DNA of 31,202 bases from contig NEEC01000331.1 of the NCBI GenBank assembly GCA_002189035.1, forward strand, positions 1 through 31,202, given 5' to 3'. The stretch is from Utricularia gibba. Lineage: Eukaryota; Plantae; Magnoliophyta. Below the pieces are notes generated by a model, which worked only from the letters and a program-made list of their open reading frames with translations, searched no databases and had not been told where the DNA came from. The stretch's first letter is position 1. The number at the start of each line of letters is the position of its first letter. Below, piece after piece: positions 546-31,202 of the stretch. Both the position numbers and the translations under genes were made by a program.

Positions 546-580
546 GTGCCACGAGGGCAAGAGGGGTTTTCACGTGGCAC
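546..580. repeat. Inverted repeat within the monomer, GTGCCACG-N19-CGTGGCAC (representative copy)
   Basis: Perfect 8-bp arms at 546-553 and 573-580. The stem extends to TCGGTG(TG)CCACG / CGTGGCACCGA with a 2-nt bulge. Confidence 0.85.
571..578. promoter_or_regulatory. G-box/ABRE-like motif CACGTGGC in each monomer (motif match only, function untested)
   Basis: CACGTGGC at 571-578 and at the equivalent position in most monomers. It matches the plant bZIP/bHLH G-box and ABRE core ACGTGGC. Confidence 0.3.
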
Positions 581-1084: not shown

Positions 1085-1116
1085 AAAGAAGAAAAAGAAA
1101 AAGAAAAAAAAAAAAA
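1085..1116 (-). terminator. Oligo(dT) RNA polymerase III terminator of the 5S unit, representative copy; repeated in each monomer
   Basis: The minus strand reads T13-CTTTTTCTTTTTCTTCTTT immediately after the 5S 3' end, the canonical position of the 5S Pol III terminator. Confidence 0.85.
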
Positions 1117-1146
1117 GGGATGCAACACGAGGACTTCCCAGGGGGT
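1117..1146 (-). pseudogene. 5S_rRNA: 5S rRNA gene 3' fragment (about +90 to +119), representative copy; present in nearly every monomer
   Basis: The minus strand reads ACCCCCTGGGAAGTCCTCGTGTTGCATCCC. This matches from memory the conserved 3' end of land-plant nuclear 5S rRNA (...GGATGGGTGACC(T/C)CCTGGGAAGTCCTCGTGTTGCATCCC). An oligo-T run follows directly. Upstream the match breaks (GAATTTTCTA instead of GGATGGGTG). Confidence 0.92.
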
Positions 1147-7100: not shown

Positions 7101-10100
7101 AAAAAAAAGAAAAAAAAAAAAAGGATGCAGGGGTTAGAAAATTCGGTGTGCACGAGGGCAAGAGGGTTTTCACGTGGGAATTGACAACCCGATGGCGTGC
7201 CGCATAAAGAAGAAAAAGAAAAAAAAAAAAGGGATGCAACACGAGGACTTCCCAGGGGGTTAGAAAATTCGGTGTGCCACGAGGGCAAGAGGGGTTTTCA
7301 CGTGGAACCGACGCGCGCGCGCCGCTGCACGCACGTTGACACCGATGGCGTGCCGCATAAAGAAGAAAAAGAAAAAGAAAAAAAAAAAAGGGATGCAACA
7401 CGAGGACTTCCCAGGGGTTAGAAAATTCGGTGTGCCACGAGGGCAAGAGGGGTTTCACGTGGCACCGACGCGCGCCGCGCGCTGCACGCACGTTGACAAC
7501 CCGATGGCGTGCCGCATAAAGAAAAAAAAGAAAAGAAAAAAAAAAAAAAGGGATGCAACACGAGGACTTCCCAGGGGGTTAGAAAATTCGGTGTGCCACG
7601 AGGGCAAGAGGGGTTTTCACGTGGCCGACGCGCGCCGCTGCACGCACGTTGACAACCCGATGGCGTGCCGCATAAAAAGAAAAAGAAAAAGAAAAAAAAA
7701 GGGATGCAACACGAGGACTTCCCAGGGGTTTAGAAAATTCGGTGTGCCACGAGGGCAAGAGGGGTTTTCACGTGGCACCGACGCGCGCGCCGCTGCACGC
7801 ACGTTGACAACCCGATGGCGTGCCGCATAAAGAAGAAAAAGAAAAAAAAAAAAAAAAAAAAAAGGGATGCAACACGAGGACTTCCCAGGGGGTTAGAAAA
7901 TTCGGTGTGCCACGAGGGCAAGAGGGGTTTTCACGTGGCACCGACGCGCGCGCCGCTGCACGCACGTTGACAACCCGATGGCGTGCCGCATAAAGAAGAA
8001 AAAAAAAAGAAAAAAAAAAAAGGGATGCAACACGAGGACTTCCCAGGGGGTTAGAAATTCGGTGTGCCACGAGGGCAAGAGGGGTTTTCACGTGGCACCG
8101 ACGCGCGCGCCGCTGCACGCACGTTGACAACCGATGGCGTGCCGCATAAAGAAGAAAAAGAAAAAGAAAAAAAAAAAAAAGGGATGCAACACGAGGACTT
8201 CCCAGGGGTTAGAAAATTCGGTGTGCCACGAGGCAAGAGGGGTTTTCACGTGGCACCGACGCGCGCGCCGCTGCACGTGACAACCCGATGGCGTGCCGCA
8301 TAAAGAAGAAAAAGAAAAAGAAAAAAAAAAAAAGGGATGCAACACGAGGACTTCCCAGGGGTTAGAAAATTCGGTGTGCCACGAGGGCAAGAGGGGTTTT
8401 CACGTGGCACGACATGCGACAACAACCCGATGGCGTGCCGCATAAAGAAAAAAAGAAAAAAGAAAAAAAAAAAAAAAGGGATGCAACACGAGGACTTCCC
8501 AGGGGGTTAGAAAATTCGGTGTGCCACGAGGGCAAGAGGGGTTTTCACGTGGCACCGACGCGCGCGCCGCTGCACGCACGTTGACAACCCGATGGCGTGC
8601 CGCATAAAGAAGAAAAAGAAAAAGAAAAAAAAAAAAAAGGGATGCAACACGAGGACTTCCCAGGGGGTTAGAAAATTCGGTGTGCCACGAGGGCAAGAGG
8701 GGGTTTTCACGTGGCACCGACGCGCGCGCCGCTGCACGCACGTTGACAACCCGATGGCGTGCCGCATAAAGAAGAAAAAGAAAAAGAAAAAAAAAAAAAA
8801 GGGATGCAACACGAGGACTTCCCAGGGGGTTAGAAATTCGGTGCCACGAGGCAAGAGGGGTTTTCACGTGTTTGGGTGCCGCATAAAGAAAAAAAGAAAA
8901 GAAAAAAAAAAAAGGGATGCGGACTTCCAGCGGTGTGCCACGAGGGCAAGGGGTTTCACGTGGAACCGACGCGCGCGCCGCTGCACGCACGTTGACAACC
9001 CGATGGCGTGCCGCATAAAGAAGAAAAAGAAAAGAAAAAAAAAAAAAAGGGATGCAACACGAGGACTTCCCAGGGTTAGAAAATTCGGTGTGCCACGAGG
9101 GCAAGAGGGGTTTTCACGTGGCCGACGCGCGCGCCGCTGCACGCACGTTGACAACCGATGGCGTGCCGCATAAAGAAGAAAAAGAAAAAGAAAAAAAAAA
9201 AAGGGATGCAACACGAGGACTTCCCAGGGGTTAGAAAATTCGGTGTGCCACGAGGGCAAGAGGGGTTTTCACGTGGCACCGACGCGCGCGCCGCTGCACA
9301 CGCACGTTGACAACCCGATGGCGTGCCGCATAAGAAGAAAAAAAAAAAGAAAAAAAAAAAAAGGGATGCAACACGAGGACTTCCCAGGGGTTAGAAAATT
9401 CGGTGCCACGAGGGCAAGAGGGGTTTTCACGTGGCGACGCGCGCGCCGCTGCACGCACGTTGACAACCCGATGGCGTGCGCATAAAGAAGAAAAAGAAAA
9501 AGAAAAAAAAAAAAAAGGGATGCAACACGAGGACTTCCAGGGGTTAGAAAATTCGGTGTGCCACGAGGGCAAGAGGGGTTTTCACGTGGCACCGACGCGC
9601 GCGCGCTGCACGCACGTTGACAACCCGATGGCGTGCCGCATAAAGAAAAAAGAAAAAGAAAAAAAAAAAAAAAGGGGATGCAACACGAGGACTTCCCAGG
9701 GGGTTAGAAAATTCGGTGTGCCACGAGGGCAAGAGGGGTTTTCACGTGGCGACGCGCGCGCCGCTGCACGCACGTTGACAACCCGATGGCGTGCCGCATA
9801 AAGAAGAAAAAGAAAAGAAAAAAAAAAAAAGGGATGCAACACGCTTCCAGGGGGTTAGAAAATTCGGTGTGCCACGAGGGCAAGAGGGTTTTCACGTGTG
9901 CAAGTTGACAACCCGATGGCGTGCCATAAAGAAAAAAGAAAAAGAAAAAAAAAAAAAAAGGGATGCAACACGAGGACTTCCCAGGGGGTTAGAAAATTCG
10001 GTGTGCACGAGGGCAAGAGGGGTTTTCACGTGGGACGCGCGCGCCGCTGCACGCACGTTGACAACCGATGGCGTGCCGCATAAAGAAGAAAAAGAAAAAG

Positions 10101-13100
10101 AAAAAAAAAAAAAGGGATGCAACACGAGGACTTCCCAGGGGGTTAGAAAATTCGGTGTGCACGAGGGCAAGAGGGGTTTTCACGTGGACCGACGCGCGCG
10201 CCGCTGCACGCACGTTGACAACCGATGGCGTGCCGCATAAAGAAAAAAAAGAAAAAGAAAAAAAAAAAAAAAAGGGATGCAACACGAGGACTTCCCAGGG
10301 GGTTAGAAAATTCGGTGTGCCCACGTGTGTGCACGCACGTTGACAACCCGATGGCGTGCCGCATAAAGAAGAAAAAGAAAAAAAAAAAAAAAAAGGGATG
10401 CAACACGTGGACTTCCAGGGGGTTAGAAAATTCGGTGTGCCACGAGGGCAAGAGGGGTTTTCACGTGGCACCGACGCGCGCGCCGCTGCACGCACGTTGA
10501 CAACCCGATGGCGTGCCGCATAAAGAAGAAAAAGAAAAGAAAAAAAAAAAAAAGGGATGCAACACGAGGACTTCCAGGGGGTTAGAAAATTCGGTGTGCC
10601 ACGAGGGCAAGAGGGGTTTTCACGTGGACGCGCGCGCCGCTGCAGCACGTTGACAACCCGATGGCGTGCCGCATAAAGAAAAAAAAAAGAAAAAAAAAAA
10701 AAAAAGGGGATGCAACACGAGGACTTCCAGGGGGTTAGAAAATTCGGTGTGCCACGAGGGCAAGAGGGGTTTCACGTGGCACCGACGCGCGCGCCGCTGC
10801 ACGCACGTTGACAACCCGATGGCGTGCCGCATAAAGAAGAAAAAGAAAAAGAAAAAAAAAAAAAGGGATGCAACACGAGGACTTCCCAGGGGGTTAGAAA
10901 ATTCGGTGTGCCACGAGGGCAAGAGGGGTTTTCACGTGGCACCGACGCGCGCGCCGCTGCACGCACGTTGACAACCCGATGGCGTGCCGCATAAAGAAAA
11001 AAAAGAAAAAGAAAAAAAAAAAAAAGGGGATGCAACACGAGGACTTCCAGGGGTTAGAAAATTCGGTGTGCCACGAGGGCAAGAGGGGTTTTCACGTGGC
11101 ACCGACGCGCGCCGCCGCTGCACGCACGTTGACCCGATGGCGTGCCGCATAAAGAAGAAAAGAAAAAGAAAAAAAAAAAAAAGGGATGCAACACGAGGAC
11201 TTCCAGGGGGTTAGAAAATTCGGTGTGCCACGAGGGCAAGAGGGGTTTTCACGTGGCCGACGCGCGCGCCGCTGCACGCACGTTGACAACCCGATGGCGT
11301 GCCGCATAAAGAAAAAAAAGAAAAAGAAAAAAAAAAAAAAAGGGATGCAACACGAGGACTTCCCAGGGGGTTAGAAAATTCGGTGTGCCACGAGGGCAAG
11401 AGGGGTTTTCACGTGGCACCGACGCGCGCGCCGCTGCACGCACGTTGACAACCCGATGGCGTGCCGCATAAAGAAGAAAAAGAAAAAGAAAAAAAAAAGG
11501 GATGCAACACGAGGACTTCCAGGGGTTAGAAAATTCGGTGCCACGAGGGCAAGAGGGGTTTTCACGTGGCACCGACGCGCGCGCGCTGCACGCACGTTGA
11601 CAACCGATGGCGTGCAAAAAGAAGAAAAAGAAAAAGAAAAAAAAAAAGGGATGCAACACGAGGACTTCCAGGGGTTAGAAAATTCGGTGTGCCACGAGGG
11701 CAAGAGGGGTTTTCACGTGGCACCGACGCGCGCGCCGCTGCACGCACGTTGACAACCCGATGGCGTGCCGCATAAAGAAAAAGAAAAAGAAAAAAAAAAA
11801 AAAAGGGGATGCAACACGAGGACTTCCCAGGGGGTTAGAAAATTCGGTGTGCCACGAGGGCAAGAGGGGTTTTCACGTGGAACCGACGCGCGCGCCGCTG
11901 CACGCACGTTGACAACCCGATGGCGTGCCGCATAAAGAAGAAAAAGAAAAAGAAAAAAAAAAAAGGGATGCAACACGAGGACTTCCCAGGGGGTTAGAAA
12001 ATTCGGTGTGCCACGAGGGCAAGAGGGGTTTTCACGTGGCACCGACGGCGCGCCGCTGCACGCGTTGACAACCGATGGCGTGCCGCATAAAGAAGAAAAA
12101 GAAAAGAAAAAAAAAAAAGGGATGCAACAGGACTTCCCAGGGGGTTAGAAAATTCGGTGTGCACGAGGGCAAGAGGGGTTTTCACGTGGCACCGACGCGC
12201 GCGCCGCTGCACGCACGTTGACAACCCGATGGCGTGCCGCATAAAGAAGAAAAAGAAAAAGAAAAAAAAAAAAAGGGATGCAACACGAGGACTTCCCAGG
12301 GGTTAGAAAATTCGGTGTGCCACGAGGGCAAGAGGGGTTTTCACGTGGCACGACGCGCGCGCCGCTGCACGCACGTTGACAACCCCGATGGCGTGCCGCA
12401 TAAAGAAAAAAAAGAAAAAAAAAAAAAAAAAAGGATGCAACGAGACTTCCAGGGGGTTAGAAAACGGTGTGCCACGAGGGCAAGAGGGGTTTTCACGTGG
12501 CACCGACGCGCGCGCCGCTGCACGCACGTTGACAACCCGATGGCGTGCCGCATAAAGAAGAAAAAGAAAAAGAAAAAAAAAAAAAAGGGATGCAACACGA
12601 GGACTTCCCAGGGGGTTAGAAAATTCGGTGTGCCACGAGGGCAAGAGGGGTTTTCACGTGGCACCGACGCGCGCGCGCGCACGCGTTGACAACCGATGGC
12701 GTGCATAAAGAAAAAAAAGAAAAAGAAAAAAAAAAAAAAGGGGATGCAACACGAGGACTTCCCAGGGGGTTAGAAAATTCGGTGTGCCGAGGGCAAGAGG
12801 GGTTTTCACGTGGCACCGACGCGCGCGCCGCTGCACGCACGTTGACAACCCGATGGCGTGCCGCATAAAGAAGAAAAAGAAAAAGAAAAAAAAAAAAAAG
12901 GGATGCAACACGAGGACTTCCAGGGGTTAGAAAATTCGGTGTGCCACGAGGGCAAGAGGGGTTTTCACGTGGCACCGACGCGCGCGCCGCTGCACGCACG
13001 TTGACAACCCGATGGCGTGCCGCATAAAGAAAAAAAAGAAAAAAAAAAAAAAAAAAGGGATGCAAACGAGGACTTCCCAGGGGTTAGAAAATTCGGTGTG

Positions 13101-15930
13101 CCACGAGGGCAAGAGGGGTTTTCACGTGGCCGACGCGCGCGCCGCTGCACGCACGTTGACAACCCGATGGCGTGCCGCATAAAGAAGAAAAAGAAAAAGA
13201 AAAAAAAAAAAGGGATGCAACACGAGGACTTCCCAGGGGGTTAGAAAATTCGGTGTGCACGAGGGCAAGAGGGGTTTTCACGTGGACGCGCGCGCCGCTG
13301 CACGCACGTTGACAACCCGATGGCGTGCCGCATAAAGAAGAAAAAGAAAAGAAAAAAAAAAAAAGGGATGCAACACGAGGACTTCCCAGGGGTTAGAAAA
13401 TTCGGTGTGCCACGAGGGCAAGAGGGGTTTTCACGTGGCACCGACGCGCGCGCCGCTGCACGCACGTTGACAACCCGATGGCGTGCCGCATAAAGAAGAA
13501 AAAGAAAAAGAAAAAAAAAAAAAAGGGATGCAAACGAGGACTTCCAGGGGTTAGAAAATTCGGTGTGCCACGAGGGCAAGAGGGGTTTTCACGTGGCACC
13601 GACGCGCGCGCCGCTGCACGCACGTTGACAACCGATGGCGTGCCGCATAAAGAAGAAAAAGAAAAAAAAAAAAAAAAAAAAGGGATGCAACACGAGGACT
13701 TCCCAGGGGTTAGAAAATTCGGTGTGCCACGAGGGCAAGAGGGGTTTTCACGTGGCACCGACGCGCGCGCCGCTGCACGCACGTTGACAACCCGATGGCG
13801 TGCCGCATAAAGAAGAAAAAGAAAAAGAAAAAAAAAAAAGGGATGCAACACGAGGACTTCCGGGGGTTAGAAAATTCGGTGTGCCACGAGGGCAAGAGGG
13901 GTTTTCACGTGGCAACGCGCGCGCCGCTGCACGCACGTTGACAACCGATGGCGTGCCGCATAAAGAAAAAAAAGAAAAAGAAAAAAAAAAAAAGGGATGC
14001 AACACGAGGACTTCCCAGGGGGTTAGAAAATTCGGTGTGCCACGAGGGCAAGAGGGTTTTTCACGTGGCGACGCGCGCGCCGCTGCACGCACGTTGAGAT
14101 GGCGTGCCGCATAAAGAAAAAAAGAAAAAGAAAAAAAAAAAAAGGGATGCAACACGAGGACTTCCCAGGGGGTTAGAAAATTCGGTGTGCCACGAGGGCA
14201 AGAGGGGTTTTCACGTGTGCGCGCCGCTGCACGCACGTTGACCCGATGGCGTGCCGCATAAAGAAAAAAAGAAAAAGAAAAAAAAAAAAAAGGGATGCAA
14301 CACGAGGACTTCCCAGGGGGTTAGAAAATTCGGTGTGCCACGAGGGCAAGAGGGTTTTCACGTGGCCGACGCGCGCGCCGCTGCACGCACGTTGACAACC
14401 GATGGCGTGCCGCATAAAGAAGAAAAAGAAAAAAAAAAAAAAAAAGGGATGCAACACGCTTCCAGGGGGTTAGAAAATTCGGTGTGCCACGAGGGCAAGA
14501 GGGGTTTTCACGTGGCACCGACGCGCGCGCGCTGCAACGACAACCCGATGGCGTGCCGGAAGAAAAAGAAAAAAAAAAAAAAGGGATGCAACACGAGGAC
14601 TTCCCAGGGGTTAGAAATTCGGTGTGCACGAGGGCAAGAGGGGTTTTCACGTGGCACCGACGCGCGCGCCGCTGCACGCACGTTGACAACCCGATGGCGT
14701 GCCGCATAAAGAAGAAAAAGAAAAAGAAAAAAAAAAAAAAGGGATGCAACACGAGGACTTCCCAGGGGGTTAGAAAATTCGGTGTGCCACGAGGGCAAGA
14801 GGGGTTTTCACGTGGCACCGACGCGCGCCGCTGCACGCACGTTGACAACCGATGGCGTGCCGCATAAGAAGAAAAAAAAGAAAAAAAAAAAAAAAAGGGA
14901 TGCAACACGAGGACTTCCCAGGGGGTTAGAAAATTCGGTGTGCCACGAGGGCAAGAGGGGTTTTCACGTGGCACCGACGCGCGCGCCGCTGCACGCACGT
15001 TGACAACCCGATGGCGTGCCGCATAAAGAAAAAAAAGAAAAAGAAAAAAAAAAAAAGGGATGCAACACGCCAGGGGGTTAGAAAATTCGGTGTGCCACGA
15101 GGGCAAGAGGGGTTTTCACGTGGAACCGACGCGCGCGCCGCTGCACGCACGTTGACAACCGATGGCGTGCCGCATAAAGAAGAAAAAGAAAAAGAAAAAA
15201 AAAAAAAGGGATGCAACACGAGGACTTCCCAGGGGGTTAGAAAATTCGGTGTGCCACGAGGGCAAGAGGGGTTTTCACGTGGCACCGACGCGCGCCGCTG
15301 CACGCACGTTGACAACCGATGGCGTGCCGCATAAAGAAAAAAAAGAAAAAGAAAAAAAAAAAAAAAGGGATGCAACACGAGGACTTCCCAGGGGGTTAGA
15401 AAATTCGGTGTGCCACGAGGGCAAGAGGGGTTTTCACGTGGAACGACGCGCGCGCCGCTGCACGCACGTTGACAACCCGATGGCGTGCCGCATAAAGAAG
15501 AAAAAGAAAAAGAAAAAAAAAAAAAGGGATGCAACACGAGGACTTCCCAGGGGGTTAGAAAATTCGGTGTGCCACGAGGGCAAAGGGGTTTTCACGTGGC
15601 ACCGACGCGCGCCGCTGCACGCACGTTGACAACCCGATGGCGTGCCGCATAAAGAAGAAAAAGAAAAAGAAAAAAAAAAAAAAAAGGGATGCAACACGAG
15701 GACTTCCAGGGGTTAGAAAATTCGGTGTGCCACGAGGGCAAGAGGGGTTTTCACGTGCACCGACGCGCGCGCCGCTGCCGCACGTTGACAACCGATGGCG
15801 TGCCGCATAAAGAAGAAAAAGAAAAAGAAAAAAAAAAAAAGGGATGCAACACGAGGACTTCCAGGGGGTTAGAAAATTCGGTGTGCCACGAGGGCAAGAG
15901 GGGTTTTCACGTGGCACCGACGCGCGCGCG

Positions 15931-16010
15931 CCCCCACGAAAAAAAAAAAAAAAAAAAAAAAACGTGGTAACGGGGCAAAAAACAAGCTGAAACGAAAGAA
16001 TTTTTCCCAC
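15931..16010. other. Non-monomer interruption of ~80 bp with an A24 run (origin unclear; possibly low-quality sequence)
   Basis: CCCCCACG-A24-CGTGGTAACGGGGCAAAAAACAAGCTGAAACGAAAGAATTTTTCCCAC replaces most of one monomer, including its 5S fragment. Confidence 0.45.
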
Positions 16011-18756
16011 ACGAGGGCAAGACGTGGCACCGACGCGCGCCGCTGCACGCACGTTGACAACCGATGGCGTGCCGCATAAAAAAAAAAGAAAAAGAAAAAA
16101 AAAAAAAAGGGATGCAACACGAGGACTTCCCAGGGGTTAGAAAATTCGGTGTGCCACGAGGGCAAGAGGGGTTTTCACGTGGACCGACGCGCGCGCCGCT
16201 GCACGCACGTTGACAACCCGATGGCGTGCCGCATAAAGAAGAAAAAGAAAAAGAAAAAAAAAAAAAGGGATGCAACACGAGGACTTCCCAGGGGGTTAGA
16301 AAATTCGGTGTGCACGAGGGCAAGAGGGGTTTTCACGTGGCACCGACGCGCGCGCCGCTGCACGCACGTTGACAACCCGATGGCGTGCCGCATAAAGAAA
16401 AAAAAAAAAAGAAAAAAAAAAAAAAAGGGATGCAACACGAGGACTTCCCAGGGGGTTAGAAAATTCGGTGTGCCACGAGGGCAAGAGGGGTTTTCACGTG
16501 GACCGACGCGCGCGCGCTGCACGCACGTTGACAACCCGATGGCGTGCCGCATAAAGAAGAAAAAGAAAAAGAAAAAAAAAAAAAGGGATGCAACACGTGG
16601 ACTTCCAGGGGGTTAGAAAATTCGGTGTGCCACGAGGGCAAGAGGGGTTTTCACGTGGCACCGACGCGCGCGCCGCTGCACGCACGTTGACAACCGATGG
16701 CGTGCCGCATAAAGAAAAAAAGAAAAAGAAAAAAAAAAAAAAGGGATGCAACACGAGGACTTCCCAGGGGTTAGAAAATTCGGTGTGCCACGAGGGCAAG
16801 AGGGGTTTTCACGTGGCACCGACGCGCGCGCGCTGCTGCACGTTGACAACCCGATGGCGTGCCGCATAAAGAAGAAAAAGAAAAAAAAAAAAAAAAAAAG
16901 GGATGCAACACGAGGACTTCCCAGGGGGTTAGAAAATTCGGTGTGCCACGAGGGCAAGAGGGGTTTTCACGTGGCACGACGCGCGCGCGCCGCTGCACGC
17001 ACGTTGACAACCGATGGCGTGCCGCATAAAGAAGAAAAAAAAAGAAAAAAAAAAAAAGGGATGCAACACGAGGACTTCCAGGGGTTAGAAATTCGGTGTG
17101 CCACGAGGGCAAGAGGGGTTTTCACGTGGCACCGACGCGCGCGCCGCTGCATTGACAACCGATGGCGTGCCGCATAAAGAAAAAAAAGAAAAAAAAAAAA
17201 AAAAAAAGGGATGCAACACGAGGACTTCCAGGGGGTTAGAAAATTCGGTGTGCCACGAGGGCAAGAGGGGTTTTCACGTTGCCCGGCCCGCGACGCACGT
17301 TGAGATGGCGTGCCGCATAAAGAAGAAAAAGAAAAAGAAAAAAAAAAAAAAAGGGATGCAACACGAGGACTTCCCAGGGGGTTAGAAATTCGGTGTGCCA
17401 CGAGGGCAAGAGGGGTTTTCACGTGGCCCGACGCGCGCGCCGCTGCACGCACGTTGAAACCCGATGGCGTGCCGCATAAAGAAAAAAAAAAAGAAAAAAA
17501 AAAAAAAGGGATGCAACACGAGGACTTCCAGGGGGTTAGAAATTCGGTGTGCACGAGGGCAAGAGGGGTTTTCACGGCCGACGCGCGCCGCTGCACGCAC
17601 GTTGACAACCCGATGGCGTGCCGCATAAAGAAGAAAAAGAAAAAGAAAAAAAAAAAAGGGATGCAACACGAGGACTTCCCAGGGGTTAGAAAATTCGGTG
17701 TGCCACGAGGGCAAGAGGGGTTTTCACGTGGCACCGACGCGCGCGCGCCGCTGCACGCACGTTGACAACCCGATGGCGTGCCGCATAAAGAAGAAAAAGA
17801 AAAAAAAAAAAAAAAAAAGGGATGCAACACGAGGACTTCCCAGGGGTTAGAAAATTCGGTGTGCCACGAGGGCAAGAGGGGTTTTCACGTGCACGACGCG
17901 CGCCGCTGCACGCACGTGGCCGATGGCGTGCCGCATAAAGAAGAAAAAGAAAAAGAAAAAAAAAAAAAGGGATGCAACACGTGGACTTCCAGGGGGTTAG
18001 AAAATTCGGTGTGCCACGAGGGCAAGAGGGGTTTTCACGTGGCACCGACGCGCGCGCCGCTGCACGCACGTGGATGGCGTGCCGCATAAAGAAAAAAAGA
18101 AAAAGAAAAAAAAAAAAAGGGATGCAACACGAGGACTTCCCAGGGGTTAGAAAATTCGGTGTGCCACGAGGGCAAGAGGGTTTCACGTGGCACCGACGCG
18201 CGCGCCGCTGCAGCGCACGTTGACAACCCGATGGCGTGCCGCATAAAGAAGAAAAAGAAAAAGAAAAAAAAAAAAGGGATGCAACACGAGGACTTCCCAG
18301 GGGTTAGAAAATTCGGTGTGCCACGAGGGCAAGAGGGGTTTTCACGTGGCACCGACGCGCGCGCCGCTGCACGCACGTTGACAACCGATGGCGTGCCGCA
18401 TAAAGAAAAAAAAGAAAAAGAAAAAAAAAAAAAAAGGGATGCAACACGTGGACTTCCCAGGGGGTTAGAAAATTCGGTGTGCACGAGGGCAAGAGGGGTT
18501 TTCACGTGGCACCGACGCGCGCGCCGCTGCACGCACGTTGACAACCCGATGGCGTGCCGCATAAAGAAGAAAAGAAAAAAAGAAAAAAAAAAAAGGGATG
18601 CAACACGTGGACTTCCCAGGGGGTTAGAAAATTCGGTGTGCCACGAGGGCAAGAGGGGTTTTCACGTGGCACCGACGCGCGCGCCGCTGCACGCACGTTG
18701 ACAACCCGATGGCGTGCCGCATAAAGAAGAAAAAGAAAAAGAAAAAAAAAAAAAAA

Positions 18757-19017
18757 GGGATGCAACACGAGGACTTCCCAGGGGGTTAGGGGGAGTTATG
18801 GGAATTAATGACGCAACCGATCGCGCGACCAAGTGAGGAAGCGACGCTTTGATCCGCAAGCACCCGCATCGTTTCGAAGCTCCTTTGGGCTCGCTTGTGG
18901 AGCACGAAACGATGCTGCGTCCCTCGAAACGCAGCCGCACGGGGGACGACGCAGCAGCGGCGGCGCGTGACGAAGACCGCGATCAGCGAAGATGCGAACG
19001 GATGGGCATGTGGGAGG
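18757..19017 (-). pseudogene. 5S_rRNA: Long unit 1: degraded or mis-assembled near-full 5S rDNA unit (gene remnant ~18757-18818 plus extra spacer)
   Basis: A ~228-bp insert (18790-19017) lies exactly at the monomer junction. GGAGTTATGGGAATTAATG resembles the 5S reverse complement GGAGTTCTGATGGGATCCGGTGCATTAGTG, and CGCAACCGAT resembles the gene start. Spacer blocks are shared with the other three inserts. Confidence 0.6.
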
Positions 19018-19147
19018 TAGAAAATTCGGTGTGCCACGAGGGCAAGAGGGGTTTTCACGTGGCACCGACGCGCGCGCCGCTGCACGCACGTTGACAACCC
19101 GATGGCGTGCCGCATAAAGAAAAAAAGAAAAGAAAAAAAAAAAAAAA

Positions 19148-19372
19148 GGGATGCAACACGAGGACTTCCCAGGGGGTGGCCAATGGGATGGGGTGCACTG
19201 GCGCACCCGATTGGTGCGCGCGATGAGGCGTCAACAGACGCTTTGATCCGCGTGAAGCACCGCGCATCGTTTCGAAGGAGCCCGACGCAGGGGCTTAGCA
19301 CGAAACGATGCTGCGTTGACGAAGAGATGTTCGCGATCAGCGAAGATGCCACGAGACGGGATGGCAAGAGAC
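19148..19372 (-). pseudogene. 5S_rRNA: Long unit 2: degraded or mis-assembled near-full 5S rDNA unit (gene remnant 19148-19208 plus extra spacer)
   Basis: Insert 19178-19372 contains ATGGGATGGGGTGCACTGG, similar to the 5S reverse complement ATGGGATCCGGTGCATTAG. It also contains CGCACCC (19202-19208), the reverse complement of the 5S start GGGTGCG, with C at -1 on the minus strand. Confidence 0.7.
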
Positions 19373-20441
19373 TAGAAAATTCGGTGTGCCACGAGGGCAA
19401 GAGGGGTTTTCACGTGGCACCGACGCGCGCGCCGCTGCACGCACGTTGACAACCCGATGGCGTGCCGCATAAAGAAGAAAAAGAAAAAGAAAAAAAAAAA
19501 GGGATGCAACACGTGGACTTCCCAGGGTTTAGAAAATTCGGTGTGCCACGAGGGAAAGAGGGTTTTCACGTGCACGACGCGCGCGCCGCTGCAGCACGTT
19601 GACAACCCGATGGCGTGCCGCATAAAGAAGAAAAAGAAAAAAAAAAAAAAAAGGGATGCAACACGTGGACTTCCAGGGGGTTAGAAAATTCGGTGTGCCA
19701 CGAGGGCAAGAGGGGTTTTCACGTGGCACCGACGCGCGCGCCGCTGCACGCACGTTGACAACCCGATGGCGTGCCGCATAAAGAAGAAAAAGAAAAAGAA
19801 AAAAAAAAAGGGATGCAACACGTGGACTTCCAGGGGTTAGAAAATTCGGTGTGCCACGAGGGCAAGAGGGGTTTTCACGTGGCACGACGCGCGCGCCGCT
19901 GCACGCACGTTGACAACCCGATGGCGTGCCGCATAAAGAAGAAAAAGAAAAAGAAAAAAAAAAAAAAAGGGATGCAACACGAGGACTTCCCAGGGGTTTA
20001 GAAAATTCGGTGTGCCACGAGGGCAAGAGGGTTTTCACGTGGCACCGACGCGCGCGCCGCTGCACGCACGTTGACAACCCGATGGCGTGCGCATAAAGAA
20101 GAAAAAGAAAAAGAAAAAAAAAAAAGGGATGCAACACGAGGACTTCCCAGGGGGTTAGAAAATTCGGTGTGCCACGAGGGCAAGAGGGGTTTTCACGTGG
20201 CACCGACGCGCGCGCCGCTGCACGCACGTTGACAACCCGATGGCGTGCCGCATAAAGAAGAAAAAGAAAAAGAAAAAAAAAAAGGGATGCAAACGTGGAC
20301 TTCCCAGGGGGTTAGAAAATTCGGTGTGCCGAGGGCAAGAGGGGTTTTCACGTGGCACCGACGCGCGCGCCGCTGCACGCACGTTGACAACCCGATGGCG
20401 TGCCGCATAAAGAGAAAAAGAAAAAAAAAAAAAAAAAAAAA

Positions 20442-20693
20442 GGGATGCAACACGAGGACTTCCCAGGGGGTCAGCCCAAAGCAAACTTCGGTGCCGGTGC
20501 ACTGCGTTGCGCGCGACAACATGCGTCGAAGCATAATTTCAGACCGGACGCGTGAAGCACCGCGCAAAGCGAGACGGGGCTCGCTTGGTGGAGCAAGAAC
20601 GAAAACGCAGCCGCACGGGGGGACGACGCAGCAGCGGCGCGGCGTGACGAAAGATGTTCGCGATCAGCGAGGATGGGCATTGGCAACTTGAGA
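20442..20693 (-). pseudogene. 5S_rRNA: Long unit 3: degraded or mis-assembled near-full 5S rDNA unit (gene remnant ~20442-20503 plus extra spacer)
   Basis: The 5S match extends past the usual junction (GGGGGTCA). It continues with GCCCAAAGCA, AACTTCGG and CCGGTGCACT, which are collinear pieces of the 5S reverse complement (GCCCAAGCACGCTTAACTTCGGAG...ATCCGGTGCA). Confidence 0.72.
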
Positions 20694-20824
20694 AGAAAAT
20701 TCGGTGTGCCACGAGGGCAAGAGGGGTTTTCACGTGGCACCGACGCGCGCGCCGCTGCACGCACGTTGACAACCCGATGGCGTGCCGCATAAAGAAGAAA
20801 AAGAAAAAAAAAAAAAAAAAAAAA

Positions 20825-20993
20825 GGGATGCAACACGAGGACTTCCCAGGGGGTGTAAGCTTTTGGGAATTAACGCACCCGATTGGTGTTGACATGCGTC
20901 GTGCAAAGCGGCGGCGTTAAAGAACGGGGGCAACGAAACGAAAAAGCCGCACGATGACGAAGAAGAATGAAATGGAGACGGGAAAACTTGAGA
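20825..20993 (-). pseudogene. 5S_rRNA: Long unit 4: degraded or mis-assembled near-full 5S rDNA unit (gene remnant 20825-20880 plus extra spacer)
   Basis: Insert 20855-20993 contains CGCACCCGATTGGTG (5S start plus upstream flank, identical to long unit 2). It ends in AACTTGAGAAGAAA as in long unit 3. Confidence 0.62.
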
Positions 20994-23900
20994 AGAAATT
21001 CGGTGTGCCACGAGGGCAAGAGGGGTTTTCACGTGGCACCGACGCGCGCGCCGCTGCACGCACGTTGACAACCCGATGGCGTGCCGCATAAAGAAGAAAA
21101 AAAAAAGAAAAAAAAAAAAAGGGATGCAACACGAGGACTTCCCAGGGGGTTAGAAAATTCGGTGTGCCACGAGGGCAAGAGGGGTTTTCACGTGGCACGA
21201 CGCGCGCGCCGCTGCACGCACGTTGACAACCCGATGGCGTGCCGCATAAAGAAAAAAGAAAAAGAAAAAAAAAAAAGGGATGCAACACGTGGACTTCCCA
21301 GGGGGTTAGAAAATTCGGTGTGCCGAGGGCAAGAGGGGTTTTCACGTGGCACCGACGCGCGCGCCGCTGCACGCACGTTGACAACCCGATGGCGTGCCGC
21401 ATAAAGAAGAAAAAGAAAAAAAAAAAAAAAAAAAGGGATGCAACACGTGGACTTCCCAGGGTTAGAAAATTCGGTGTGCCACGAGGGCAAGAGGGGTTTT
21501 CACGTGGCACCGACGCGCGCGCCGCTGCACGCACGTTGCCCGATGGCGTGCCGCATAAAGAAGAAAAAGAAAAAGAAAAAAAAAAAAGGGATGCAACACG
21601 TGGACTTCCCAGGGGGTTAGAAAATTCGGTGTGCCACGAGGGCAAGAGGGGTTTTCACGTGGCACGACGCGCGCGCCGCTGCACGCACGTTGACAACCCG
21701 ATGGCGTGCCGCATAAAGAAGAAAAAAGAAAAAAAAAAAAAAAAGGGATGCAACACGAGGACTTCCCAGGGGGTTAGAAAATTCGGTGTGCCACGAGGGC
21801 AAGAGGGGTTTTCACGTGCACTGCACGCACGTTGACAACCCGATGGCGTGCCGCATAAAGAAGAAAAAGAAAAAAAAAAAAAAAGGGATGCAACACGTGG
21901 ACTTCCCAGGGGGTTAGAAAATTCGGTTGCCACGAGGGCAGAGGGGTTTTCACGTGGCAACCGCTGCACGCACGTTGACAACCCGATGGCGTGCCGCATA
22001 AAGAAGAAAAGAAAAAAGAAAAAAAAAAAAGGGATGCAACACGGGACTTCCAGGGGGTTAGAAAATTCGGTGTGCCACGAGGGCAAGAGGGGTTTCACGT
22101 GGCACCGACGCGCGCGCCGCTGCACGCACGTTGACAACCCGATGGCGTGCCGCATAAAGAAGAAAAAGAAAAAGAAAAAAAAAAAAGGGATGCAACACGT
22201 GGACTTCCCAGGGGGTTAGAAAATTCGGTGTGCAACGAGGGCAAGAGGGGTTTCACGTGGCACCGACGCGCGCGCTGCACGCACGTTGACAACCCGATGG
22301 CGTGCCGCATAAAGAAAAAAAAAAAAGAAAAAAAAAAAAAAAGGGATGCAACACGAGGACTTCCCAGGGGTTAGAAAATTCGGTGTGCACGAGGGCAAGA
22401 GGGTTTTCACGTTGCACGCACGTTGACAACCCGATGGCGTGCCGCATAAAGAAGAAAAAGAAAAAGAAAAAAAAAAAAAGGGATGCAACACGTGGACTTC
22501 CCAGGGGGTTAGAAAACGAGGGCAAGAGGGGTTTTCACGTGGCACACGCGCGCGCCGCTGCACCGTTGACAACCGATGGCGTGCCGCATAAAGAAGAAAA
22601 AGAAAAGAAAAAAAAAAAAAGGGATGCAACACGTGGACTTCCCAGGGGGTTAGAAAATTCGGTGTGCCACGAGGGCAAGAGGGGTTTTCACGTGGCACGA
22701 CGCGCGCGCCGCTGCACGCACGTTGACAACCCGATGGCGTGCCGCATAAAGAAGAAAAAGAAAAAGAAAAAAAAAAAGGGATGCAACACGTGGACTTCCA
22801 GGGGGTTAGAAAATTCGGTGTGCCACGAGGGCAAGAGGGGTTTTCACGTGGCACCGACGCGCGCGCCGCTGCACGCACGTTGACAACCCGATGGCGTGCC
22901 GCATAAAGAAGAAAAAGAAAAAGAAAAAAAAAAAAGGGATGCAACAAATTCCCAGGGGTTAGAAATTCGGTGTGCAACGAGGCAAGAGGGGTTTTCACGT
23001 GCACCGACGCGCGCGCCGCTGCACGCACGTTGACAACCGAATAAAGAAGAAAAAGAAAAAGAAAAAAAAAAAAAAGGATGCAACACGAGGACTTCCAGGG
23101 GGTTAGAAAATTCGGTGTGCCACGAGGGCAAGAGGGGTTTTCACGTGGCACGACGCGCGCGCCGCTGCACGCACGTTGACAACCCGATGGCGTGCCGCAT
23201 AAAGAAGAAAAGAAAAAGAAAAAAAAAAAAAGGGATGCAACACGAGGACTTCCCAGGGGGTTAGAAAATTCGGTGTGCACGAGGGCAAGAGGGGTTTTCA
23301 CGTGGCACCGACGCGCGCGCCGCTGCACGCACGTTGACAACCCGATGGCGTCCGCATAAAGAAGAAAAAGAAAAAGAAAAAAAAAAAAAAAGGGATGCAA
23401 CACGTGGACTTCCCAGGGGGTTAGAAAATTCGGTGTGCCACGAGGGCAAGAGGGTTTTCACGTGGCACGACGCGCGCGCCGCTGCACGCACGTTGACAAC
23501 CGATGGCGTGCCGCATAAAGAAGAAAAAGAAAAAGAAAAAAAAAAAAGGGATGCAGGACTTCCCAGAGAAAATTCGGTGTGCCACGAGGGCAAGAGGGGT
23601 TTTCACGTGGCACCGACGCGCGCGCCGCTGCACGCACGTTGACAACCCGATGGCGTGCCGCATAAAGAAGAAAAAAAAAAGAAAAAAAAAAAGGAATGCA
23701 ACACGAAGGGGGTTAGAAAATTCGGTGTGCCACGAGGGCAAGAGGGTTTCACGTGACGCGCGCGCCGCTGCACGCACGTTGACAACCCGATGCGTGCCGC
23801 ATAAAGAAGAAAAGAAAAAGAAAAAAAAAAAAGGGATGCAACACGTGGACTTCCAGGGGGTTAGAAATTCGGTGTGCAACGAGGGCAAGAGGGGTTTTCA

Positions 23901-26900
23901 CGTGGCACGACGCGCGCGCCGCTGCACGCACGTTGACAACCCGATGGCGTGCCGCATAAAGAAGAAAAAGAAAAAGAAAAAAAAAAAGGGATGCAACACG
24001 GACTTCCCAGGGGTTAGAAAATTCGGTGTGCCACGAGGGCAAGAGGGGTTTTCACGTGGACCGACGCGCGCGCGCCACGCACGTTGACAACCCGATGGCG
24101 TGCCGCATAAAGAAAAAGAAAAAGAAAAAAAAAAAAAAGGGATGCAACACGAGGACTTCCAGGGGTTAGAAAATTCGGTGTGCCACGAGGCAAGAGGGGT
24201 TTACGTGGTTGTGCCGCATAAAGAAGAAAAAGAAAAAGAAAAAAAAAAAAAAGGGATGCAACACTTCCCAGGGGGTTAGAAAATTCGGTGTGCCACGAGG
24301 GCAAGAGGGGTTTTCACGTGGCACCGCGCGCGCGCCGCTGCACGCACGTTGACAACCCGATGGCGTGCCGCATAAAGAAGAAAAAGAAAAAGAAAAAAAA
24401 AAAAGGGATGCAACACGTGGACTTCCCAGGGGGTTAGAAAATTCGGTGTGCCACGAGGGCAAGAGGGGTTTCACGTGCCGACGCGCGCGCGCTGCACGCA
24501 CGTTGACAACCCGATGGCGTGCCGCATAAAGAAGAAAAAGAAAAAGAAAAAAAAAAAAAGGGATGCAACACGTGGACTTCCCAGGGGGTTAGAAATTCGG
24601 TGTGCCACGAGGGCAAGAGGGGTTTTCACGTGGACCGACGCCGCGCCGCTGCACGCACGTTGACAACCCGATGGCGTGCCGCATAAAGAAGAAAAAGAAA
24701 AAAGAAAAAAAAAAAAGGGATGCAACACGAGGACTTCCCAGGGGTTAGAAAATTCGGTGTGCCACGAGGGCAAGAGGGTTTTCACGTGGCACCGACGCGC
24801 GCGCCGCTGCCGCACGTTGACAACCGATGGCGTGCCGCATAAAGAAAAAAAAGAAAAAGAAAAAAAAAAAAAGGGATGCAACACGAGGACTTCCAGGGGG
24901 TTAGAAAATTCGGTGTGCCACGAGGGCAAGAGGGGTTTTCACGTGGCACCGAGCGCGCGCCGCTGCACGCACGTTGACAACCCGATGGCGTGCCGCATAA
25001 AGAAGAAAAAGAAAAAGAAAAAAAAAAAAGGGATGCAACACGAGGACTTCCCAGGGGGTTAGAAAATTCGGTGTGCAACGAGGGCAAGAGGGGTTTTCAC
25101 GTGGCACCGACGCGCGCGCCGCTGCACGCACGTTGACAACCCGATGGCGTGCCGCATAAAGAAGAAAAAGAAAAGAAAAAAAAAAAAAAGGGATGCAACA
25201 CGAGGACTTCCCAGGGGGTTAGAAAATTCGGTGTGCCACGAGGGCAAGAGGGGTTTTCACGTGGCACCGACGCGCGCGCCGCTGCACGCACGTTGACAAC
25301 CCGATGGCGTGCCGCATAAAGAAGAAAAAGAAAAAAAAAAAAAAAAAAAGGGATGCAACACGAGACTTCCCAGGGGTTAGAAAATTCGGTGTGCCACGAG
25401 GGCAAGAGGGTTTTCACGTGGCACCGACGCGCGCGCCGCTGCACGCACGTTGACAACCCGATGGCGTGCCGCATAAAGAAGAAAAAGAAAAAGAAAAAAA
25501 AAAAAAGGGATGCAACGAGGACTTCCCAGGGGTTAGAAAATTCGGTGTGCCACGAGGGCAAGAGGGGTTTTCACGTGGCACCGACGCGCGCGCGCTGCAC
25601 GCACGTTGACACCCGATGGCGTGCCGCATAAAGAAGAAAAAGAAAAAAAAAAAAAAAAAAAGGGATGCAACACGAGGACTTCCCAGGGGGTTAGAAAATT
25701 CGTGTGCCACGAGGGCAAGAGGGGTTTTCACGTGGCACCGACGCGCGCGCCGCTGCACCACGTTGACAACCCGATGGCGTGCCGCAAAAGAAAAAAGAAA
25801 AAGAAAAAAAAAAAAAGGGATGCAACACGAGGACTTCCCAGGGGGTTAGAAAATTCGGTGTGCCACGAGGGCAAGAGGGGTTTTCACGTGGCACCGACGC
25901 GCGCGCCGCTGCACGCACGTTGACAACCCGATGGCGTGCCGCATAAAGAAAAAAAAAGAAAAAGAAAAAAAAAAAGGGGATGCAACACGAGGACTTCCCA
26001 GGGGGTTAGAAAATTCGGTGTGCCACGAGGGCAAGAGGGGTTTTCACGTGGCACCGACGCGCGCGCCGCTGCACGCACGTTGACAACCCGATGGCGTGCC
26101 GCATAAAGAAGAAAAAGAAAAAGAAAAAAAAAAAAAGGGATGCAACACGAGGACTTTCCCAGGGGGTTAGAAAATTCGGTGTGCCACGAGGGCAAGAGGG
26201 GTTTTCACGTGGCACCGACGCGCGCGCCGCTGCACGCACGTTGACAACCCGATGGCGTGCCGCATAAAGAAGAAAAAGAAAAAGAAAAAAAAAAAAAGGG
26301 ATGCAACACGAGGACTTCCCAGGGGGTTAGAAAATTCGGTGTGCCACGAGGGCAAGAGGGGTTTTCACGTGGCACCGACGCGCGCGCCGCTGCACGCACG
26401 TTGACAACCCGATGGCGTGCCGCATAAAGAAAAAAAGAAAAAAAAAAAAAAGGGATGCAACACGTGGACTTCCAGGGGGTTAGAAAATTCGGTGCCACGA
26501 GGGCAAGAGGGTTTTCACGTGGCACCGACGCGCGCGCCGCTGCACGCACGTTGACACCCGATGGCGTGCCGCATAAAGAAGAAAAAGAAAAAGAAAAAAA
26601 AAAAAAGGATGCAACACGAGGACTTCCCAGGGGTTAGAAAATTCGGTGTGCCACGAGGGCAAGAGGGGTTTTCACGTGGCACCGACGCGCGCGCCGCTGC
26701 ACGCACGTTGACAACCCGATGGCGTGCCGCATAAAGAAAAAAAGAAAAAAAAAAAAGGGATGCAACACGAGGACTTCCAGGGGTTAGAAAATTCGGTGTG
26801 CCACGGGGCAAGAGGGTTTTCACTGGCACGACGCGCGTGCACGCACGTTGACAACCCGATGGCGTGCCGCATAAAGAAGAAAAAGAAAAAGAAAAAAAAA

Positions 26901-29900
26901 AAGGGATGCAACACGGGACTTCCCAGGGGGTTAGAAAATTCGGTGTGCCACGAGGGGAGGGGTTTCACGTGGCACCGACGCGCGCGCCGCTGCACGCACG
27001 TTGACAACCCGATGGCGTGCCGCATAAAGAAGAAAAAGAAAAAGAAAAAAAAAAAGGGATGCAACACGAGGACTTCCCAGGGGTTAGAAAATTCGGTGTG
27101 CCACGAGGCAAGAGGGGTTTTCACGTGGCACCGACGCGCGCGCCGCTGCACGCACGTTGACAACCGATGGCGTGCCGCATAAAGAAGAAAAGAAAAAGAA
27201 AAAAAAAAAAGGGATGCAACGAGGACTTCCCAGGGGGTTAGAAAATTCGGTGTGCCACGAGGGGGGGTTTTCACGTGGCACCGACGCGCGCGCCGCTGCA
27301 CGCACGTTGACAACCATGGCGTGCCGCATAAAGAAAAGAAAAAGAAAAAAAAAAAAAAAGGGATGCAACACGAGGACTTCCCAGGGGGTTAGAAAATTCG
27401 GTGTGCCACGAGGGCAAGAGGGGTTTTCACGTGCCGACGCGCGCGCCGCTGCACGCACGTTGACAACCCGATGGCGTGCCGCATAAAGAAGAAAAAGAAA
27501 AAGAAAAAAAAAAAAAAGGGATGCAACACGAGGACTTCCCAGGGGGTTAGAAAATTCGGTGTGCCACGAGGGCAAGAGGGGTTTTCACGTGGCACCGACG
27601 CGCGCGCCGCTGCACGCACGTTGACAACCGATGGCGTGCCGCATAAAGAAGAAAAAGAAAAAAAAAAAAAAAAAAAGGGATGCAACACGAGGACTTCCCA
27701 GGGGGTTAGAAAATTCGGTGTGCCAGGGGCAAAGGGGTTTTCACGTGACCGACGCGCGCGCCGCTGCACCACGTTGACAACCCGATGGCGTGCCGCATAA
27801 AGAAGAAAAAGAAAAAAAAAAAAAAAAGGGATGCAACACGAGGACTTCCCAGGGGTTAGAAATTCGGTGTGCTTTTCACGTGGCACCGACGCGCGCGCCG
27901 CTGCACGCACGTTGACAACCCGATGGCGTGCCGCATAAAGAAGAAAAAGAAAAAGAAAAAAAAAAAAGGGATGCAACACGGACTTCCCAGGGGGTTAGAA
28001 AATTCGGTGTGCCACGAGGGCAAGAGGGGTTTTCACGTGGCACCGACGCGCGCGCCGCTGCACGCACGTTGACAACCCGATGGCGTGCCGCATAAAGAAG
28101 AAAAGAAAAAGAAAAAAAAAAAGGGATGCAACACGAGGACTTCCCAGGGGGTTAGAAAATTCGGTGTGCCACGAGGGCAAGAGGGGTTTTCACGTGGCAC
28201 CGACGCGCGCGCCGCTGCACGCACGTTGACAACCCGATGGCGTGCCGCATAAAGAAGAAAAAGAAAAAAAAAAAAAAAAAGGGATGCAACACTTCCCAGG
28301 GGGTTAGAAAATTCGGTGTGCCACGAGGGCAAGAGGGTTTTCACGTGGCACCGACGCGCGCGCCGCTGCACGCACGTTGACAACCCGATGGCGTGCCGCA
28401 TAAAGAAGAAAAGAAAAAGAAAAAAAAAAAAGGGATGCAACACGAGGACTTCCCAGGGGTTTAGAAAATTCGGTGCCACGAGGGCAAGAGGGGTTTTCAC
28501 GTGGCACCGACGCGCGCGCCGCTGCACGCACGTTGACAACCCGATGGCGTGCCGCATAAAGAAGAAAAAGAAAAGAAAAAAAAAAAAGGGATGCAACACG
28601 TGGACTTCCCAGGGGTTAGAAAATTCGGTGTGCCACGAGGGCAAGAGGGGTTTTCACGTGGCACCGACGCGCGCGCCGCTGCACGCACGTTGTGGCGTGC
28701 CGCATAAAGAAGAAAAAGAAAAAGAAAAAAAAAAAAAAGGGATGCAACACGAGGACTTCCCAGGGTTAGAAAATTCGGTGTGCCACGAGGGCAAGAGGGG
28801 TTTTCACGTGGACCGACGCGCGCGCCGCTGCACGCACGTTGACAACCCGATGGCGTGCCGCATAAAGAAGAAAAAGAAAAAGAAAAAAAAAGGGATGCAA
28901 CACGAGGACTTCCCAGGGGGTTAGAAAATTCGGTGTGCCACGAGGGCAAGAGGGTTTTGGCACCGACGCGCGCGCCGCTGCACGCACGTTGACAACCCGA
29001 TGGCGTGCCGCATAAAGAAGAAAAAGAAAAAAAAAAAAAAAAAGGGATGCAACACGACTTCGGGGGTTAGAAAATTCGGTGTGCCACGAGGCAAGGGGTT
29101 TTCACGTGGCACCGACGCGCGCGCCGCTGCACGCACGTTGACAACCCGATGGTGCCGCATAAGAAAAAAAAAGAAAAAAAAAAAAAAGGGATGCAACACG
29201 AGGACTTCCCAGGGGGTTAGAAAATTCGGTGCCACGAGGGCAAGAGGGCACGTGTGCACGCACGTTGAGGCGTGTAAAGAAAAAGAAAAAGAAAAAAAAA
29301 AAAAAAGGGATGCAACACGAGGAACGGTGTGCACGAGGGCAAGAGGGTTTTCACGTGGACGCGCGCGCCGCTGCACGCACGTTGACAACCGATGGCGTGC
29401 CGCATAAAGAAAAAAGAAAAAGAAAAAAAAAAAAAAGGGATGCAACACGAGGACTTCCAGGGGTTAGAAAATTCGGTGTGCCACGAGGGCAAGAGGGGTT
29501 TTCACGTGGCACCGACGCGCGCGCCGCTGCACGCACGTTGACAACCCGATGGCGTGCCGCATAAAGAAGAAAAAGAAAAAGAAAAAAAAAAAAAAAAGGG
29601 ATGCAACACGAGGACTTCCAGGGGGTTAGAAAATTCGGTGTGCCACGAGGGCAAGAGGGGTTTCACGTGGCACCGACGCGCGCGCCGCTGCACGCACGTT
29701 GACAACCCGATGGCGTGCCGCATAAAGAAGAAAAAGAAAAAGAAAAAAAAAAAAAAGGGATGCAACACGTGGACTTCCCAGGGGGTTAGAAAATTCGGTG
29801 TGCCACGAGGGCAAGAGGGGTTTTCACGTGGACCGACGCGCGCGCGCTGCACGCACGTTGACAACCCGATGGCGTGCCGCATAAAGAAGAAAAAGAAAAA

Positions 29901-31202
29901 GAAAAAAAAAAAAAGGGATGCAACACGAGGACTTCCCAGGGGGTTAGAAAATTCGGTGTGCCACGAGGGCAAGAGGGGTTTTCACGTGCTGCAACGTTGA
30001 CAACCCGATGGCGTGCCGCATAAAGAAGAAAAAGAAAAAGAAAAAAAAAAAAAAGGGGATGCAACACGAGGACTTCCAGGGGTTAGAAATTCGGTGTGCC
30101 ACGAGGGCAAGAGGGTTTCACGTGGCACCGACGCGCGCGCCGCTGCACGCACGTTGACAACCCGATGGCGTGCCGCATAAAGAAGAAAAAGAAAAGAAAA
30201 AAAAAAAAGGGATGCAACACGAGGACTTCCCAGGGGGTTAGAAAATTCGGTGTGCCACGAGGGCAAGAGGGGTTTTCACGTGGCATGCACGCACGTTGAC
30301 AACCCGATGGCGTGCCGCATAAAGAAGAAAAAGAAAAAGAAAAAAAAAAAAGGGATGCAACACGGGACTTCCCAGGGGTTAGAAAATTCGGTGGCCACGA
30401 GGGCAAGAGGGTTTTCACGTGGCACCGACGCGCGCGCCGCTGCACGCACGTTGACAACCGATGGCGTGCCGCATAAGAGAAGAAAAAGAAAAAAAAAAAA
30501 AAAAAAGGATGCAACACGAGGACTTCCCAGGGGTTAGAAAATTCGGTGTGCCACGAGGGCAAGAGGGGTTTTCACGTGGCACCGACCGCGCGCCGCTGCA
30601 CGCACGTTGACAACCCGATGGCGTGCCGCATAAAGAAGAAAAAAAAAAGAAAAAAAAAAAAAGGATGCAACACGAGGACTTCCCAGGGGGTTAGAAAATT
30701 CGGTGTGCCACGAGGCAAGAGGGGTTTTCACGTGGCACCGACGCGCGCGCCGCTGCACGCACGTTGACCCGATGGCGTGCGCATAAAGAAGAAAAGAAAA
30801 AGAAAAAAAAAAAAAGGATGCAACACGAGGACTTCCCAGGGGTTAGAAAATTCGGTGTGCCACGTTTTCGTGGCACCGACGCGCGCGCCGCTGCACGCAC
30901 GTTGACAACCCGATGGCGTGCCGCATAAAGAAAAAAGAAAAAGAAAAAAAAAAAAAGGGATGCAACACGAGGACTTCCCAGGGGGTTAGAAAATTCGGTG
31001 TGCCACGAGGGCAAGAGGGGTTTCACGTTGGCAACACACCGCACATTGACCCATGGGAGAAAAACGCACAACAAGACTTTGAGGCACACAGAGAAAATTC
31101 GGTGTGCCACGAGGGCAAGAGGGGTTTTCACGATTGCCCGATGGCGTGCCGCACGAACGGTGTGCAACGAGGCAAGGGGTGGGCACCGACGCGCGCGCCG
31201 CT

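Follow-up and report, generated by a model that had tools for sequence, protein, structure and literature searches.

A 5S rDNA-derived satellite array of Utricularia gibba with four long units that are probably relics of its parent repeat

Can a satellite array that carries a piece of the 5S rRNA gene still hold, among its short monomers, the unit from which it was derived? This question is raised by a contig of Utricularia gibba (NEEC01000331.1 of GenBank assembly GCA_002189035.1), positions 1 to 31,202 of which, read on the forward strand and referred to here as the window, contain four units that are longer than the monomers surrounding them. An earlier note on this DNA had proposed that the four are complete ancestral 5S repeats and that the satellite expanded inside a working 5S locus. 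The analysis presented here retains the ancestry and gives up the completeness: the four long units are dead relics rather than rare complete units, and their layout and residual gene sequence suggest that they are probably remnants of a longer 5S-rDNA-type unit that was the parent of the 159-bp satellite by way of one internal deletion.

The window (31.2 kb) is a single tandem array for which TRF returned a period of 157-160 and a monomer of ~159 bp in about 190 copies, and for which monomer anchors (n=187) had a modal spacing of 158-159. Read on the minus strand, the short monomer consists of the tail of the 5S gene (positions ~89-119), a T-run terminator, and a proximal spacer of ~115 nt. 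Each monomer retains the final 30 nt of the plant 5S rRNA gene on that strand and closes with ACCCCCTGGGAAGTCCTCGTGTTGCATCCC before the run of T; the run itself comprises 11-21 T after GCATCCC and is present in all monomers and in the long units. A search with nhmmer, using a profile built from 13 natural plant 5S genes, yielded 188 matches in the window, every one of them on the minus strand and nearly all confined to model positions 89-118, with a best E for the monomer 5S tails of 8e-07. The natural plant references were obtained by scanning metagenome contigs for the 30-mer tail with two degenerate positions; the exact 30-mer tail pattern also recovers genuine plant 5S genes from such contigs, and the natural plant 5S genes of these metagenome loci score 72-116 bits with the Rfam 5S model. 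Monomer sequence beyond the 5S tail was absent from the 55 metagenome loci scanned. One of the metagenome contigs with a plant 5S array (L042) matched the bacterial SSU rRNA model at positions 1-152 (85 bits), a stretch that may be an organellar rRNA fragment or the sign of a chimeric contig.

Substitutions among monomers are few (0.5 per 116 nt), and the units run head to tail across 31 kb. The array is thus a satellite in the ordinary sense, long, homogeneous, arranged head to tail, and with a 5S-similar segment in each unit. Homopolymer length aside, the junction GGGGGTTAGAAAATTCGG is common to nearly all of the ~190 short monomers, which indicates a single founding deletion.

Several features of the array are recorded here in their own right. 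The variant CACGTGG, derived relative to the 5S-like state CACGAGG, occurs in 26 monomers, 21 of which lie within 16.5-24.5 kb (window 16585-24560), and the first 16 kb of the array are almost purely of the ancestral CACGAGG type. The long units are located inside this more heterogeneous, CACGTGG-bearing domain, and all four carry CACGAGG, as real 5S genes do. At the right edge (31034-31202) the units are rearranged, with a 58-bp stretch that is not monomer followed by monomer fragments in a different order; this may represent the array boundary or a variant domain. The putative centromeres of U. gibba have been reported to be without satellite repeats (PMC8333044), a report that has no bearing on this array.

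Table 1. Coordinates of the satellite array and of the long units within it; positions are those of the window.
Feature	Positions	Strand	Layout
Satellite array	1..31033	minus	~190 monomers of ~159 bp; TRF, anchors, nhmmer
L1 long unit, 391 bp	18757..19147	minus	tail 18757-18786; 5S 5' remnant 18787-18818 (32 nt); distal spacer 18819-19017; monomer part to 19147
L2 long unit, 353 bp	19148..19500	minus	tail 19148-19177; 5S 5' remnant 19178-19208 (31 nt); distal spacer 19209-19372; then monomer part
Six ordinary short monomers	19501..20441	minus	between the two long-unit pairs
L3 long unit, 383 bp	20442..20824	minus	tail 20442-20471; 5S 5' remnant 20472-20506 (35 nt); distal spacer 20507-20693; then monomer part
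L4 long unit, 296 bp	20825..21120	minus	tail 20825-20854; 5S 5' remnant 20855-20880 (26 nt); shortened distal spacer 20881-20995; then monomer part

When the window was masked by BLAST with the monomer consensus, the only stretches left uncovered inside the array were 18790-19011, 19178-19372, 20475-20693, and 20855-20995, with one further uncovered stretch at the right edge (31034-31091). The insert of L1 extends over 18790-19017 when the TAG that flanks it is counted once, and TAG stands at both of its ends. All four inserts start directly after the end of the 5S tail (plus strand ...CCCAGGGGGT) and all four stop directly before (T)AGAAAATTCGG, that is, at the same position of the monomer. 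The earlier note had placed four inserts at the monomer junction, and masking recovered them there to within a few bases of the coordinates it gave; the ten sequence blocks that it quoted are likewise all exact, confined to the units to which they were assigned, and found nowhere else in the 31 kb. The long units lie side by side in two pairs, with six short monomers between one pair and the other. The uncovered stretch at the right edge (58 bp) was considered as a fifth relic and was rejected, having no significant similarity to any of the inserts.

Multiple alignment indicates that the four inserts are collinear homologs that differ by many indels, and exact collinear blocks of at least 7 nt that are common to at least one other insert make up 65-75% of each. 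For example, ATCGGGTGCG is common to L4 and L2 and TTAATTCCCA to L4 and L1. Two deletion junctions are also held in common, TAAT^TCCCA by L1 and L4 and CAG^TGCACC by L2 and L3, so that some erosion of the gene predates the separation of these copies. That the inserts descend from one longer unit, as had been proposed, is borne out by these relationships and by the fact that they continue the gene immediately 5' of its 30-nt tail. The monomer parts of the four long units (~159 bp) are identical to the satellite consensus and are free of the small deletions that are common elsewhere in the array; whole long units have only 70-77% identity over aligned columns, which places the inserts roughly 25-45% apart. 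Groupings within the inserts conflict, since the gene remnant pairs L1 with L4 and L2 with L3, whereas the other end of the insert pairs L1 with L2 and L3 with L4. Taken together, we infer that the abundant short monomers homogenize the sequence that they have in common with the long units and that the older inserts recombined among themselves.

The distal spacers contain some local structure. The distal spacers of L1 (18866-18915) and L2 (19264-19311) both contain an inverted repeat with perfect arms of 11 bp (GCATCGTTTCG / CGAAACGATGC), which is conserved although the loops of 26-28 nt differ between the two units, and L3 and L4 have weaker inverted repeats elsewhere. The minus-strand start of the L2 insert (19347-19372) reads CTCTTGCC...CTCGTGGCA, a near-repeat of a monomer-spacer motif ~30 nt upstream, and this marginal similarity (p 0.07) hints at a possible short sub-repeat in the spacer.

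The link between the inserts and the missing part of the gene comes from the 26-35 nt that adjoin the 5S tail, which consist of ordered pieces of 5S positions 1-88 in the correct orientation. With a natural plant gene (metagenome locus L047:411-529) as the 5S reference for alignments, gapped local alignment of positions 1-88 to the 100 nt beside the tail gave z values of 3.6 (L1), 4.8 (L2), and 5.7 (L3) against a dinucleotide-shuffle null. L4 taken alone had no significant similarity to positions 1-88, either by gapped local alignment or by the block-chain test described below. When gap extension was made more expensive and the full insert served as target, only L2 still aligned significantly to 5S. 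It should be noted that the gapped alignment used a cheap gap extension picked after the sequences had been seen, and for this reason the comparison was repeated with a statistic free of gap parameters, the block-chain score, defined as the summed length of exact matches, each k nt or longer (k = 6), that follow one another collinearly in the 60 nt beside the tail, and evaluated against dinucleotide shuffles. Scores were 18, 20, 16, and 7 nt for L1 to L4, respectively, against shuffle nulls of 3-5 nt (2.7 for L1, 5.4 for L2, and 4.2 for L3), with p <=0.007 in three of the four inserts and a summed z of 5.9. Scores stayed near null when the sequence was reverse-complemented or simply reversed and when the 60 nt at the distal end of each insert were used instead, the corresponding 60 nt of the short monomer scored 0, and three other natural plant 5S genes used as reference gave summed z values of 3.3-5.5. 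The pieces retained are roughly positions 1-7, 9-12, 21-24, 33-38, and 42-47 in L1, positions 1-7, 14-17, 24-29, and 32-38 in L2, and positions ~24-31, 46-53, 59-67, and 87-88 in L3, in which the nhmmer match reaches model position 85 (matches in the window end at 84-89). The remnants of L2 and L4 open with the exact start of the gene, GGGTGCG (5S +1..+7), with C at -1. These ordered blocks uphold the earlier proposal that the left parts of the inserts match pieces of 5S +1..+89.

What is left of the gene falls far short of a gene. The front of 88 nt has been cut to 26-35 nt, with 26-39 of its 88 positions matching. The Rfam 5S family (RF00001), for which membership is set by a sequence of ~120 nt with its structure at a score of at least 38 bits, gave no match at its gathering score in the whole window, nor any at E up to 10 with permissive filters within 18300-21300. 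The 5S gene is transcribed from an internal type-1 Pol III promoter that comprises box A (~50-64), an intermediate element (~67-72), and box C (~80-97), as described for Xenopus and Arabidopsis. By these generally given positions, the long units have lost box A and the intermediate element together with most of box C: L1, L2, and L4 are without positions ~48-88, L3 has only 46-53 and 59-67 of this region, and box C is represented in all units by ~89-97 only. As judged from their sequence, the long units would thus be left without most of the internal Pol III promoter.

These observations bear directly on the proposal that the four units are complete, possibly functional ancestral 5S repeats and that the satellite around them grew within a working 5S locus. 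The inserts do occupy the place of 5S +1..+88 and hold ordered pieces of it, and the gene start in L2 and L4 is exact to the base preceding it. However, natural plant genes reach scores with the Rfam model that no sequence in the window approaches closely enough to be reported, only the fraction of front positions given above is left, the profile matches end at model positions 84-89, and intact 5S is absent from the 31 kb. Completeness is consequently highly improbable, and the idea of a satellite grown inside a working 5S locus finds no support in this window. The earlier note had also asked how the number of functional 5S copies is maintained; because the window is without an intact 5S gene, this question does not arise here, and with no working 5S gene the window is uninformative about it. 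As to the size that was proposed for the parent unit, the monomer (159 bp), a distal spacer of 115-200 bp, and the missing gene front (88 bp) add up to roughly 400-450 bp, and a parent of more than 450 bp is plausible.

Other origins for the inserts were considered and rejected. A dimer or chimera of two diverged 5S-derived subunits, with the monomer as a crossover product, is not borne out, as the monomer body compared to 5S 1-88 gave a z of only 0.2 and comparisons of the inserts to the monomer and to 5S 60-119 were also non-significant. Insertion of a transposon, such as a Cassandra-type element bearing 5S sequence, was rejected since all four inserts lie at one and the same position and extend the 5S tail in collinear order. 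Searches of the inserts for other RNA genes returned a single chance-level lncRNA match in Rfam at E up to 10, a tRNA search of the inserts found none, exact look-up of the five ORF translations that span the inserts gave no match, and a protein search with a 204-aa ORF across L1-L2 gave none either.

A history that would account for these observations begins with a parent unit that, on the minus strand, ran from a 5S gene through a T-run terminator, a proximal spacer, and a distal spacer to the next gene. In this model, the monomer spacer and the distal spacer are both putative homologs of the 5S spacer of U. gibba. A single deletion would have taken out the distal spacer together with gene positions 1 to about 88, fusing ...GAATTTTCTA to ACCCCCTGGG... 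and leaving a unit that had no promoter and consisted of the gene tail, the terminator, and the proximal spacer. The deletion may have occurred in an L1-like unit between two TAG triplets, although a match of 3 nt can be due to chance; a deletion between the two TAG triplets of L1 would yield exactly the junction of the short monomer. The promoter-less unit would then have been amplified about 200-fold, presumably by unequal crossing-over, with four undeleted units persisting as the two adjacent pairs. The gene was probably already eroding when the short unit arose, its front passing from 88 nt to 26-35 nt through several small deletions, some of them common to more than one copy. Gene conversion or unequal exchange may keep the monomer parts of the long units identical to the satellite, while the inserts, with few partners, would have drifted and recombined among themselves. 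By this account, the sequence supports the long form as ancestral in structure and the short monomer as its deletion derivative.

Two features sit less comfortably with this history. It is odd that the gene pieces retained should differ from one to the next of four neighboring units and yet add up to a similar total length. Moreover, identical monomer parts beside diverged inserts would require efficient homogenization with a sharp boundary. The basis for such a boundary is that ~159 bp match the consensus up to the deletion junction, and the 140-228 bp between are diverged and mosaic. A stricter version of the scenario, in which the exchange that homogenizes the array is confined strictly to homologous sequence and stops at a boundary sharp to the base, and in which the gene front was whittled from 88 to ~30 nt almost exclusively by many small deletions with few substitutions, is offered as a tentative possibility rather than as a probable outcome. 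A strong deletion bias has been proposed for this very small plant genome. If reads confirm the inserts, loss of the gene front would offer a direct local read-out of that bias.

The quality of the sequence is pertinent to these arguments. Variation among monomers, measured across 167 of them, is dominated by deletions, at 2.0 events per 116 nt, mostly in homopolymers and up to 21 nt long, versus the 0.5 substitutions noted above (a ratio of four to one), and 103 of the 174 monomer variants are singletons. Occasional deletions of 12-21 nt occur in monomers (window 1-31033) beside the homopolymer deletions. The excess of deletions and the singletons probably represent residual long-read consensus error in a poorly polished contig, and such long-read-type deletion noise makes single-base differences and small indels in the inserts unreliable. 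It could be argued further that the inserts themselves are an artifact, in which a noisy consensus rendered one real longer sequence, or several from elsewhere in the genome, with dropouts and mosaics, so that the differences among the inserts and the loss of 5S sequence would for the most part be technical. This would fit the deletion-rich error profile, the fact that the inserts differ mainly by missing blocks with few substitutions in the retained 5S blocks, and the absence of independent insert copies from the ORF-translation look-ups. Against this, deletions are sparser in the 18-21 kb interval than anywhere else in the window, none occurs in the monomer part of any of the four long units, and reads should be anchored more reliably by unique inserts than by monomers. 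Monomer deletions of at least 5 nt occur at ~1.3 per kb, a rate at which the 352 nt of gene fronts should contain less than one, yet a dozen or more are seen there, and true substitutions and common junctions are present between copies. An artifact of this kind is quite unlikely.

A further alternative accepts the long units as real and as 5S-derived but has them arrive late, through ectopic exchange with an older array of long 5S-derived units elsewhere, for example the canonical 5S locus. The sharp contrast between homogenized monomer parts and diverged, mosaic inserts is what such an event could leave, as is the occurrence of the long units as two adjacent pairs in a more heterogeneous domain. 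The location of all four inserts exactly at the junction of the founding deletion, however, is more simply explained by local survival, and secondary acquisition seems improbable to about the same degree as the artifact. Descent of the satellite from the long units by an internal deletion, with local persistence of a few undeleted copies, is the reading carried forward here.

The birth of satellites from 5S rDNA is an established principle, with examples in fish, frogs, and Plantago among the references given in PMC12692304. In fish, 5SHindIII-DNA of Hoplias malabaricus is cited there as a satellite derived from 5S rDNA (Martins et al., 2006, Genetica 127:133; cited in PMC12692304). The array described here resembles it in being a tandem satellite from a 5S rDNA unit. 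5SHindIII-DNA reportedly combines a truncated portion of the gene with a portion of the spacer. Unlike the present array, it belongs to an animal, is centromeric, and has a unit of ~360 bp in which most of the gene is kept, whereas the 159-bp unit described here has lost all of the gene but its final 30 nt and shares its array with longer relic units. The PcP190 satellite of frogs also arose from 5S rDNA and comprises a gene-like and a variable region (Vittorazzi et al., 2011; PMC11675491, PMC4201667). It shares a 5S rDNA origin with the U. gibba satellite but keeps a region of ~120 bp similar to the whole transcribed 5S, whereas the monomer described here amounts to a quarter of the gene and has no internal promoter. 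Among plants, a B chromosome of Plantago lagopus carries a satellite derived from 5S rDNA (Kumke et al., 2016; PMC6410184). Both are plant satellites amplified from 5S rDNA, that of Plantago being linked to the B chromosome. We know of no relic long units in the P. lagopus satellite, and, to the best of our knowledge, it is rare for such intermediates to share an array with the satellite to which they gave rise. What the U. gibba array would add to these systems is four undeleted, eroded units inside the array that fix both the direction and the breakpoints of the founding deletion, and with them a base-level picture in which one internal deletion leaves tail, terminator, and proximal spacer, the product is amplified, and a few decaying undeleted units are left behind.
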